Source: Tubulanus polymorphus
Lineage: Eukaryota > Animalia > Nemertea
NCBI RefSeq assembly: GCF_964204645.1
Contig: NC_134036.1
Coordinates: 1,364,001-1,428,000, forward strand
Length of the DNA stretch: 64,000 nt
Reading direction: 5' to 3'
A program made the translations under genes and the position numbers. Each line of letters begins with the position of its first letter. The stretch's first letter is position 1. This document shows, piece by piece, positions 6,657-57,407 of the stretch. The notes beneath the pieces are model-generated. The model made no database searches and was not told the DNA's origin. It worked only from the letters and a program-made list of their open reading frames with translations.

Positions 6657-9600
6657 ATGTATCGTGAAAGAAACATCTTTCGTTTTTTGCTGTTGTTTAT
6701 TCTATGTCTATTCATCACAAACACATCAGGTGAGTTAATCAATACTCATTGGTTCCAGAGCTGTAAAAAATGCGGAAATCGTAAATATTGTATTGTATTT
6801 CAATCCATAAGAGAGCACCGATGATAACCAGAGAAAGAAGAGAATTATTGTTGGAGAACAGCATTTGGAGAATATTTTTGTAAAATAATCTTCTTTTTGT
6901 CATTTCAGCGAAATGTTTTGGGAAGAGTTGTACTGGTTGGGAGTGTCATTGCAGTAATACAGCTGTGGACCAATGTCCAATAAGAAGTCGGAATACAGAT
7001 GGCGCTTTAACGTGTCCAAATCCCAATTCTGCATGTGAGTCTACAATAAAAACTCCGTATCCCTGGACACCACCAGGATGGACCGGACCAGCTTGTCAAA
7101 TCGGTAAGTTTTCTGTATCAACTGTTTCTGCTCCAGTAAACCGGGATCAGGTCAAATATCACTGAACCTCGGATTTATATCAAATTAACGGATTAACTCC
7201 ATGAAAGCCTTTACAAAAATAAATCTTAAAGAATTAGGAATGAATGATGTAAATTTCATTAGATTTATCTCAGATTAACCGAATAACACTAAAACTAATC
7301 CGTATACGGATTAACGTCACTAATCCATAAGCGGGAAAAAAATTTATTGGTAAAAATATCATAGATTTATGAAACTTCCGGGAACTGTCAACGAACTGAG
7401 ATCAACTCGCGATGAAATAATCAAATTATTTCATCGCGTAAAGAAAAAAATGTTAGTTTTGTTTAATTCTAGTTGAAATTGTGAAATAACTTTGAATCAA
7501 TTTGTTTTTGTTCGTTTTGAAAATTCGTGAAATAATTCAAATCTCTTATTCACAAAATGTGTTTTGTAGGAAACGTGGCTCGTGGTAAAACAGTTGCAAT
7601 GTCATCCATTCTCAGGATTGAAAGTGACTATCGCGGTAGTAAATGTACAGATGGTCAGATGGTAAGTGGAATGTGTCACACTAAAGATAATCAAGACGCC
7701 TGGATTAGAATTGATCTCGGTGCTCAATACGTCGTACATGAAGTTACACCTTGGGATAGAAGAGACGTGACTGGTTGCACCGATAACCCGTGGAATTCGT
7801 GGAGTGAGTACAAATTATTAATGTTGATTGATCATCTAGGCCAAATCTGATAGAAAAAATATATAACTTCAGCTCGAAAAGCCTGGTTGAATATAAACCA
7901 AGTTTAGATGAGTGATTTTTTCAGAAAAGTTTGACCCGAGATAAGTTGAAACTTTGAACTCTACCGAAATATCGAACTCAGAGTCAACAATAATCAATAA
8001 TCTGTAAATAAAGTCAGTTCGACAACAATGTGTCTGTGGTATCCATGGATGACAACTTCGTAAAAAATACGTCATTGGAATTTTGAATCAACTTTTTCGA
8101 CGTGTCAACATTTTCAGTCGATAACTATAAATTTGTGCTAGGGGCCGTGCGCCTGTCGAAAACAATTAATTTATTTTTATATTTCTTTTTCAAAGAGTTT
8201 GAACAGAATTGTTTTGCACCCAAAGCAATCTTCAGCTTCCCGGATGTCGTGCATTATCATTTGTTTTCATCTTTCAAAGCTTCTTAATTCTTTTTCTCAG
8301 AAAAACGTTCGCGCAACCTGGAGATTCGAGTTGGAGATGAATATGGCAATGATACAAGTATTTCTACATCTAACCAGAAATGTGCTTACCATGGCTTACC
8401 CCCTCTCTGTGGTACACATAAAACATTAGCATGCAGCCCAGGTCCTATAGTTGGACGATACGTCACCGTTCAACACAAGAACATTGGCTACGCAGAGTCT
8501 CTCGCACTGGCAGAAATAGAAGTTATCGGGTTCAAATATATCGGTAAGTTTTACATGACTATATATATGTGTAAACTATAAAGAGTATATGGAAATGGAT
8601 TTTGCTTTTCTCGAAAATATTCAGTGACTTTTATATAGAATTTACCCCCGAACGAAAAATTTTGAAATGAAAAGAAGTCTCCCTTTATTACCAAAGTTTG
8701 GTTTTTAAGCACCCATTCATTTATGGATTTATTATTGTTAAAATTAGATCGATTTTCATAAAAATATTCAGTGACTTGTAATGGGAATATATTTCCGAAA
8801 GATCGAACGATTCATATTTTTCGTATCAAATTTGAATTTCTGTTTAGCACCCGGTGATTGTAGTAAGGGATCGAACTCATTTGGATGTATGATTGAATGT
8901 AGATGTTACAACAGTGAAAGTTGTAACTATTTGAGTGGTATCTGTGAATCTGGCTGTTCACAGAATTACATCGGAAAGTGGTGCGAGTCAGGTATATTAC
9001 ACTGAATCATAGATTCCTGGGAATCTCACTTCCTATTCCCGAAATATAGTAACCAATATGAATCGAAAATGATACCAAGTAAAAAAAAACCGAAAGTAAA
9101 AGATCCTTACCCTTTATTTTATTCGATTCACCTGAAATTAACATCTCAGATTTCTTTTTCAGAATTGAAATCGTTTTCTCAATTAACAAAATCTGCGCTG
9201 ACAGATAACAGTGTAAAAGTCAGATGGAGAGCTTACTCGGGTTCTGTAGTAGATTCAGGACGTGGTACTGTCAGCGTTCAGTATCTAGTCGTTTATCGTA
9301 AAATATCAGAAAAGACTTGGACTAATCAGGAAACTGCAGGAGTCCTTACACATCGCACAATTACTGGTTTAACTCCTAATACCGGGTATAAGATAGCTGT
9401 TAGACTACAGAAAATAGTGAACAATCAACTTATATCAACTGCGAGTCTGACTAGTACAGTATTAACTTTGTGTGCAGGTAAAACCCCTCATTCTAATAAA
9501 CTCTTAATCATCATTTCAAACACAGAATTGTGTTGAACATGTTTGTTTTACTGTAGATCCATTAAACGGTCCTAAAGGTGTTCGTGTGGTGTCCACAGCG

Positions 9601-55800: not shown

Positions 55801-57407
55801 ACTATCTACTTCAGAAACAGTACATTCTCGTGCACCAGATTCTACTGGAGGAACTGGTACTGGGACCGGTGGCGTACCCGACCACGAGTTTCAGAGAATC
55901 ATACGAGGAAAGAAAGGCAATGCGTCCTGTATCTAGAAACGTGTCTGATAAAATAGAGGAACAATTTCTTGTACGTATTAAGATCGGCCAAAATGAGATG
56001 AAGGGTTTTGGATAACAAACAGATGGCAGCAATGAATCCATTGACCCAGATAAACTAGATTTCAATTTTTTTTTCCTTGGTTTGGTTTTGAAGAAAATAA
56101 TTACCCAATGCGTTGTTTTCTGATGCAGGTTTTGAAGGCATCAACTCCGATTCAGGACGAGGAATCACTAGCAATGGCCAAACTACTCAACAATGTTAAC
56201 AAGTCCCGATACAAAGACATCCTTCCCGAGGCACAGTATCAACCGCAACTCTCACATAAAGGGTTCATTAATGCTTCATTTGTGCACGTGAGTTTGATTC
56301 TGAATTAATAGCTATCCGTGGAATATCTGGTAGAGGGGGGGGGGGCATTAAGCCTCGATAATCTTCAGTTGAGATATCGATAAGTTATAAGAATCTGATT
56401 GAAATACTTTCCTTTTTACAGACGATCACAGATAAAAACGTGTTTATAGCAACACAAAGTCCAATGGCAAATACTATTACTGACTTTTGGCAAATGATCT
56501 TTGACTATAACTGTGAACTTATTGTGATGATGCATCAAGAATGTCCACAAGATCCGGTAAGGCTACTCCTAGTCTAGCACTGCTTAGTATAGATATCTTC
56601 TAAATGTATGACGGTCTGGTTCGTGGGAATCCTTTTTCAGAATATATCTTATAATTTCAGACATATGCAAACTATTGTCCTGCAGCTGGAAGTATTAAAT
56701 GCAGTCCTTTTACAGTCACTGTTGAGGAGGTATCATTGCCCTTTAAGACCATCGTTCGCCGGAATTTGATCCTCCAAAAACAGAATGTATGTTGAGTTAT
56801 TTCGGTAGCTACTTTTCAGAGAAATATAGCTGCATTTTTCGGAATTTCCTTCGACATTGCTATTTACTATGACCTGATCAGATCAATTTTATTTCTTTGA
56901 TTTCACAGGAATCGCATCAGATTCGTCAGATCCAGTTTTTAGGATGGCCTGAGGATGAGTCGGTTCCTAATTTACAATATCTATTCGAGTTTGTGAATCT
57001 AGTTACAAGAGAACACGTGACCAGTCCTATTGTTGTACATTGCATGTTCGTATCTTAGTAACATCAGTCAATTATTCAAAACAATATCACATATTCTATC
57101 GATTATGCAAATTTTACAGGGACAGCACAACGAGAGCAGGGCTATTTTGTGCGGCATTTGAACTGATCACCAAGGCGCCATCTAGCGAACAAATCGACAT
57201 TTATCACTGTATACAAAAACTACGAATGACTCGACCTCAATTCATTCCAAATTTGGTAAGAAATTAATCGATTTACTTTGTATTTTCACGAGTTATTTTA
57301 TAGATGTATTTTTCTTGTTTTCGTATTCATAGGAACAGTACAAGTTTCTACACGATCTGGTGATATTCTATTTACAAGGATTCGACACTTATGTGAACCT
57401 TAGTTAG
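49844..57407 (+). CDS. F-type lectin/EGF/FN3 receptor protein tyrosine (pseudo)phosphatase, copy 4
   Basis: Lectin exons 50727-50963 and 51459-51698, RRRKR furin site, D1 [11 protein letters not shown] (GGC at 55514-55516), stop at 57405-57407. Confidence 0.88.

Follow-up and report, generated by a model that had tools for sequence, protein, structure and literature searches.

A tandem array in the ribbon worm Tubulanus polymorphus joins hypervariable F-type lectins to a predicted pseudophosphatase tail: a candidate recognition-receptor repertoire

The palaeonemertean ribbon worm Tubulanus polymorphus carries, in a 64,000-nucleotide stretch of its genome that we call the window (C12:1,364,001-1,428,000), a head-to-tail array of genes that join an F-type lectin to the tail of a receptor-type protein tyrosine phosphatase (PTP). 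In each complete gene the first of the two phosphatase domains (D1) reads Gly in place of its catalytic Cys, and the lectin varies between copies chiefly in loops that align to those around the glycan pocket. The mechanism best supported for this locus, and in our view a probable one, is a lineage-specific, tandemly amplified repertoire of lectin receptors whose tail is non-catalytic; an immune or allorecognition role would be one of several possible uses of such a repertoire, and it is suggested here only tentatively. A sequence-only reading of the same DNA had proposed a cluster of this kind at 6657-57407, a span whose ends turn out to coincide exactly with the first gene's ATG and the fourth gene's stop codon. 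The window is AT-rich (~35% GC) and of animal type, with many introns, and C12 comprises 11,548,486 bases of a 268-Mb assembly. We searched the window DNA one exon at a time, while steps that required whole proteins used database proteins (P0158, P0028, P0190 and others).

The receptors consist, in order, of a signal peptide, a Cys-rich module, the F-type lectin, a second Cys-rich module, three FN3-type domains, a transmembrane (TM) segment, a Tyr-rich juxtamembrane region, D1 and the second phosphatase domain, D2. Pfam searches with the exons and with P0158, the database protein of the third gene, recovered the lectin (PF22633/PF00754), fn3, Fn3_PTPRU (PF23144) and two Y_phosphatase domains, which bears out the domain order first proposed. 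The two Cys-rich modules flanking the lectin had been taken for EGF modules; they are present and EGF-like by eye, but Pfam gave them no EGF call at E up to 10. Of the hallmarks of a classical R2B-type receptor PTP, the TM segment, the tandem PTP domains and a membrane-proximal Fn3_PTPRU are present, and the head of the protein consists of Cys-rich modules and the F-type lectin, with no PF00629 (MAM) or Ig match to P0158 in Pfam.

Sequence and predicted structure both indicate that the lectin domain is a true F-type lectin. Among PDB sequences, phmmer matched it to striped-bass FBP32 (3CQO, 2.7e-18) and eel agglutinin (1K12, 4.3e-9), as well as to lectinolysin and the SpGH98/pneumococcal fucose-binding modules. 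A single-sequence AF2 model of residues 25-296 reached a pLDDT of 34 and was replaced by an alignment-based model of the lectin alone (P0158:86-246, pLDDT 95), for which the top ten Foldseek matches were all F-type lectins, with 1K12 the best (TM 0.80) and 3CQO also found. The eel agglutinin AAA binds fucose through the triad His52, Arg79 and Arg86 (PMC5712786), and a HMMER alignment places on these positions the receptor His, the Arg of W-D-R-x-D and the Arg of an 11-residue motif further on. This triad is invariant in 23 lectin exons, the lone exception within R-x-D being one D-to-G change. Measured against the fucose motif H-X24/26-R-X-D-X4-(R/K), the His, the X26 spacing and R-x-D match, while the third basic residue (KR|SRNLEIRVG) is invariant and stands 10-14 residues past the Asp rather than 4, because CDR4 is expanded. 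The proposal of an F-type lectin in the ectodomain is thus upheld by sequence and fold, and its His/Arg/Arg triad is conserved.

When both lectin exons were extracted from the five domains in the window and from 18-19 paralogues elsewhere in the genome, the framework and triad proved almost invariant, and variation in sequence and length fell in four segments, which align to CDR1, CDR2, CDR4 and the loop after R-V-G-N (CDR5) of eel agglutinin, in agreement with the variable CDR-like loops that had been said to ring the pocket. Length differences between genes in the ectodomain exons are all multiples of 3. The ectodomain had been described as copy-specific, and the lectin is indeed its most divergent part, with 69-77% amino acid identity between distinct copies, compared to 86-91% in the rest of the ectodomain, 92-97% in D1 and 94-98% in D2. 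By the Nei-Gojobori method, the loops have a dN of 0.38 and a dS of 0.36 (ω ~1), and the framework a dN of 0.07 and a dS of 0.145 (ω 0.49). For pairs within the window, loop dN is 0.31-0.59, whereas the intron that parts the two lectin exons has diverged by 0.02-0.12 (Fisher p 4e-5 to 4e-15). Across 153 pairs loop divergence is flat, staying at ~0.36-0.41 for intron differences of 3% and of 30% alike. This mid-domain intron splits the lectin inside CDR4, and the exons that flank it form mosaics. Since the loops change several-fold faster than the adjacent intron, relaxed constraint alone is insufficient to account for them. Either the loops have been driven apart, or old loop variants have been kept while conversion homogenises their surroundings, and either would imply maintained diversity. 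The genes thus appear as clustered paralogues whose predicted binding surface outpaces neutral DNA in its divergence.

Outside the loops the array is more uniform. Self-comparison of the window reveals a head-to-tail unit of ~13.4 kb, with copies 92-97% identical overall, along which identity forms a mosaic. Copies are 97-100% identical, non-coding DNA included, over a stretch that starts at the D1 active-site exon and takes in D2, the intergenic sequence, a set of Ig-like exons and the next promoter. The ectodomain half of the unit is 84-96% identical, with a minimum of 84-87% in the first lectin exon, on either side of which the introns are 91-97% identical. Because the 3' half is so alike even in introns and intergenic DNA, it speaks for homogenisation and not for constraint alone, and the conservation of the tail between copies is partly the result of concerted evolution, that is, of gene conversion or recent duplication. 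The earlier description of a near-invariant cytoplasmic module holds insofar as the module is conserved, and is overstated given the D1 and D2 identities above and 3' non-coding DNA that is equally alike. The array extends beyond the window, with lectin and D1 exons at C12:1429193-1466772. There the lectin exons of genes A and B (the first two of the window) are found again, 87 kb and 56 kb downstream and identical at the protein level (L020, L021 and L023; C12:1457200-1463600 and 1442900-1445800), pointing to very recent higher-order duplications in the array or to a haplotype duplicated by the assembly.

An array with these properties might also arise by neutral birth and death, in which a young segmental amplification has lost its D1 activity and is drifting towards pseudogenes, the loops reflecting relaxed constraint and slippage-prone sequence. 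The units are indeed very young and undergoing homogenisation, loop ω is near 1, the co-amplified Ig-like exons carry frameshifts, and the sequencing runs available for the locus yield no GT..AG joints where they are DNA-like and no contigs from the one that may be RNA. We nevertheless consider this account very unlikely. All 27 exons are open, GT-AG junctions are found in every gene and the indels are all in frame; ω is 0.19-0.27 in D1 and D2; neither triad nor framework varies across 23 copies; and the loops evolve 3-14 times faster than the adjacent intron, which is beyond what relaxed constraint alone would give.

The tail is closest to the R2B PTPs, its best single-domain PDB chains being PTPRK, T, M and U. 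All four genes and 17 of 21 close paralogues share a ten-residue D1 signature with His-Gly, and the catalytic HCX5R is absent from D1 of genes A-D. The His-Gly is read across a clean GT-AG junction in all four genes (CAT GGC AG|gtaaat...cag|T GCT GGT, which yields an 11-residue segment), confirming the HG in D1 that had been proposed. On the forward strand the GGC codon at the catalytic-Cys position lies at 42108..42110 in gene C and at 17149 (A), 28723 (B) and 55514 (D). The remainder of the domain is well kept, with the WPD (WPDHGVP), the P-loop Arg and the Q-loop intact and a pTyr loop of KNRF. Among the 21 D1 exons of the genome that are at least 75% identical to that of gene C, 17 read CAT GGC and four read TGC (one close paralogue on C10 and three remoter sisters at C12:0.28-0.31 Mb), so that one transversion parts the dead D1 from the competent one, and the clade that has been amplified is the Gly-D1 clade. 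An assembly error at this codon was considered and rejected, as 17 different paralogues carry GGC and four carry TGC. The C10 paralogue (L043, C10:9378914-9379072, minus strand), whose exon is 92% identical, keeps CAT TGC; it either split off before the Cys-to-Gly change or reverted.

Both phosphatase domains are under purifying selection (ω 0.19-0.26 in D1 and 0.27 in D2), with nonsynonymous change below synonymous change in D1 and D2 together (p 1e-6 to 1e-9). That a D1 without its nucleophile is still under purifying selection fits a non-catalytic role, and not decay. STYX carries Gly in place of the catalytic Cys (PMC8269279), and the array genes resemble it in that Gly replaces the nucleophilic Cys while the signature motif is otherwise intact; STYX, however, is a small cytosolic protein of the dual-specificity fold, whereas the change here sits in D1 of a classical receptor PTP. 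The R2B member PTPRU is a receptor pseudophosphatase with an inactive D1 that binds PTPRK substrates and is thought to compete for them (PMC7320164). PTPRU keeps its Cys, while the array D1 is dead through the loss of the Cys itself.

It is conceivable that the receptors are still enzymes and that catalysis has shifted to D2, an unusual division of labour for which one could cite that D2 keeps C-X5-R (VHCMDSTTRAG) and evolves under purifying selection. The D2 P-loop, however, lacks the glycines of HCSAGxGRTG, WPED with an extra residue replaces WPD, and the D2 domains of receptor PTPs are generally inactive (PMC7320164). From these motifs we judge D2 to be probably inactive, and we consider a shift of catalysis to it very unlikely.

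Between the membrane and D1 lie 4-5 Tyr, in keeping with the several Tyr motifs that had been pointed out, within Y[EV]NC (AVYVNC in gene C), SAYFNIYDDP and HHYEI (gene C exons 40533-40969). The Tyr-rich insert is found only in the Gly-D1 clade, and the Cys-bearing sisters P0028 and P0152 are Pro-rich at this point. Loss of the nucleophile together with the gain of Tyr suggests a switch from enzyme to scaffold.

The mechanism that we favour runs as follows. Each gene encodes a single-pass receptor made up of an F-type lectin on a Cys-rich/FN3 stalk, a TM helix and an R2B-like tandem phosphatase tail. The pocket residues are kept, the surrounding loops CDR1, 2, 4 and 5 differ between copies by substitutions and in-frame indels, and gene conversion or recent duplication keeps the remainder of the unit alike. 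A T-to-G substitution in the expanded clade, apparently a single one, replaced the D1 nucleophile Cys with Gly. The repertoire may bind different glycans and signal without D1 catalysis; D1 would then bind phosphotyrosine or sequester substrates, as STYX or PTPRU do, and the Tyr-rich juxtamembrane insert that the Gly clade gained would act as a docking site. Candidate ligands would be microbial, allogeneic, gametic or tissue self glycans. A fuller and more speculative version, which we put forward with considerable reserve, is that Nemerteans, or at least Tubulanus, possess a germline repertoire of ~20 hypervariable F-type-lectin receptors for non-self or allogeneic glycans, diversified by half-domain exon shuffling across the mid-domain intron while conversion makes the remainder uniform, in which one Cys-to-Gly change and a Tyr insert turned the tail from an enzyme into a pTyr-binding scaffold; this would make lectin receptor pseudophosphatases a new class of innate receptor.

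Several observations weigh against this interpretation or limit it. The non-canonical spacing of the third basic residue (10-14 residues rather than 4) means that fucose binding is not assured. Loop ω is about 1 and not above it, so that classical positive selection is not demonstrated, and the loop alignments themselves are uncertain owing to indels. Segments that have diverged could resist gene conversion, which would be a neutral source of loop divergence beside homogenised introns. The conserved tail is in part a product of gene conversion or recent duplication, residual D2 catalysis is possible given the retained C-X5-R, and the Tyr motifs, being short, may be chance matches. As for expression, three sequencing runs over the locus cover introns and exons alike, with no GT..AG joints, and are therefore DNA, and the single run that may be RNA has no contigs. 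Variant letters in the runs may equally come from cross-mapped paralogues, and the RefSeq isoforms of the array genes are a hint of transcription, no more.

Relatives of the tail bear on what such receptors might do. The array genes resemble the R2B PTPs (PTPRK/M/T/U) and the lophotrochozoan 'PTPRT/K-like' proteins in being single-pass, in their FN3 repeats, Fn3_PTPRU and long juxtamembrane region, and in their tandem D1-D2. They differ in lacking the MAM-Ig head of vertebrates or the Kringle of molluscs, in place of which they carry the F-type lectin and Cys-rich modules, and in forming a family of ~20 copies in arrays. The nearest proteins outside Tubulanus, at an identity of only 33-38%, are mollusc and brachiopod 'PTPRT/K-like' proteins (Kringle and FN3) and vertebrate PTPRK (MAM-Ig-FN3, PF00629). 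This kinship could mean that the receptors form a cell-cell adhesion or wiring code, in which contact with self is made as in R2B PTPs and the variable lectin head provides a cell-type-specific or homophilic specificity and not the detection of non-self. The R2B-like cytoplasmic part, the membrane-proximal Fn3_PTPRU and the long juxtamembrane would agree with such a role, as would the fact that another pseudophosphatase, PTPRU, belongs to R2B (PMC7320164). But a lectin stands where R2B PTPs have the MAM-Ig head responsible for homophilic binding, and rapid copy growth (at least 17 HG copies) with loop hypervariability would be unusual for conserved adhesion receptors, leaving adhesion, in our estimate, an unlikely explanation.

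The lectin, too, has instructive relatives. Like eel agglutinin (AAA), FBP32 and oyster bindin, the array lectins have the F-type fold, the His/Arg/Arg pocket residues and variation in the CDR loops, and their mid-domain intron is placed as in bindin. In eel lectins and oyster bindin, variation of the CDR loops widens specificity (PMC5712786). Eel isoforms keep the size of CDR1 and CDR2, which vary in length in the array, and the array CDR4 is 6-10 residues longer and lacks the vicinal Cys-Cys. The likeness to bindin raises the prospect of gamete or conspecific recognition, with loops evolving under sexual conflict or assortative recognition. In oyster bindin the lectin domains have diversified at sites of the pocket, and recombination takes place in the mid-domain intron (PMC5712786); the array domain is likewise split by an intron, which falls inside CDR4 between mosaic exons. 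Bindins, however, are secreted acrosomal proteins, while the Tubulanus genes encode TM receptors with a signalling tail, and we think a role in gamete recognition quite unlikely.

Known F-type lectins are secreted or occur with CCP, CTLD, pentraxin or simple TM segments, whereas in the array the partner is a PTP. No phosphatase partner is named in two reviews of F-type lectins (PMC5712786 among them). A profile search with the lectin exon led to P0028 (XP_074661320.1, 1740 amino acids), also from Tubulanus polymorphus, and remoter Tubulanus proteins with both lectin and PTP are P0184 (46%) and P0190 (38%), the latter with an ordinary HC in D1. As P0184 and P0190 also join a lectin to a PTP tail, the fusion is older than the array. 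Outside Tubulanus, the combination of lectin and PTP was not found among the best 150 lectin relatives (1.84 billion representatives searched), among the best 120 PTP relatives or in N-terminal searches with P0028 and P0190, though the databases may lack the proteomes of other nemerteans. The statement that no described family has the full combination therefore stands as far as these reviews and the protein searches go. In a hybrid Branchiostoma, P0306 (LOC144928212) carries an F-type-lectin-like domain (PF22633) with LRR, Sushi and tyrosine kinase domains, a parallel case of a lectin on a signalling receptor.

Snail FREPs, amphioxus VCBPs and the allorecognition loci of colonial animals are expanded sets of variable receptors with documented expression, polymorphism and function. 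The array shares with them clustered paralogues, a hypervariable binding surface and a conserved scaffold; their domains differ from its own throughout. If the repertoire that we propose is real, it would add a combination of F-type lectin and receptor PTP that those two reviews of F-type lectins do not list, and would rank among the earliest candidates for a repertoire of recognition receptors in Nemertea, whose immune genetics are almost undescribed. It would also offer a natural and repeatedly duplicated case of a receptor phosphatase becoming a pseudoenzyme by loss of its nucleophile, with Cys-bearing sisters in the same genome for comparison, and a compact locus for the joint study of concerted evolution in a scaffold and maintained diversity in loops. 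Should the genes be silent or bind one glycan, the array would be merely a young lineage-specific amplification.

The genes themselves, all on the forward strand, number four complete ones and the beginning of a fifth, and not the six paralogues first counted, of which four had been called complete. The array genes are already in RefSeq, uncharacterised, under NCBI's automatic names 'receptor-type tyrosine-protein phosphatase kappa-like' or 'T-like' (PTPRK/T-like). Gene C (36379..43976), the best defined, has 27 coding exons for 1343 amino acids; P0158 (XP_074661424.1) is 100% identical, and its exons are bounded by GT-AG and sum to exactly 4032 nt. Its lectin exons are 37272-37496 and 38067-38306, its TM exon 40265-40410, its D1 exons 41044-42570 and its D2 exons 42729-43976. 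The first of the lectin exons (exon 3, 37272..37496) encodes CDR1, CDR2, the His, R-x-D and the start of CDR4, and is the most variable exon of the unit. Gene B (22883..30583) likewise has 27 coding exons, for 1346 amino acids, with GT-AG at all junctions and no stops, and lectin exons at 23790-24020 and 24607-24834; P0181/P0160/P0176 (XP_074661489-493, isoforms X1-X3) are 100% identical. For gene D (49844..57407), projection of the gene C boundaries gives 27 open exons, each bounded by AG/GT and free of stops, whose total of 4053 nt is a multiple of 3. Its RefSeq model XP_074661348.1 (P0174) covers the C-terminal 862 amino acids only and is 100% identical from 53023 on; since the upstream exons (49844-53022) are all open with GT-AG, gene D is complete, and the RefSeq model, which starts at an internal Met, looks truncated. 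Of gene E, the signal-peptide exon and the first Cys-rich exon (63188..63632) lie in the window and the remainder beyond it.

Gene A (6657..19029), whose ATG and TAG were checked, has two lectin modules followed by TM, D1(HG) and D2, with lectin exons at 7569-7802/8303-8542 and 11229-11462/11963-12202. XP_074661440.1/441.1 (P0171/P0156, 1856 and 1828 amino acids) map to it collinearly, at 100% except for split codons. What the sequence-only reading had counted as copies 1 and 2 is thus one gene, in which the lectin-Cys-rich-FN3 module is present twice. The intron that links the first ectodomain module to the second holds a (TA/TG)n microsatellite (10243..10519), directly after which begins the self-similarity of 6846-9455 to 10519-13102. 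The microsatellite coincides exactly with the join left by the duplication within gene A from which its second lectin module arose.

An Rfam scan of the entire window at gathering thresholds, 5385-5507 included, found no RNA family. Each unit further contains, between receptor genes, Ig-like and TM exons of which the sequence-only reading made no mention (47151..48944 on the forward strand, with copies at 3963-5756, 33682-35476 and 60499-62285 and a shortened one at 22227-22513). Their matches to Ig_3/I-set are weak, and the first Ig exon carries frameshifting indels that differ by copy, one of which, a deletion of ~13 bp, takes out the first Cys codon. These exons are probably a decaying passenger gene.

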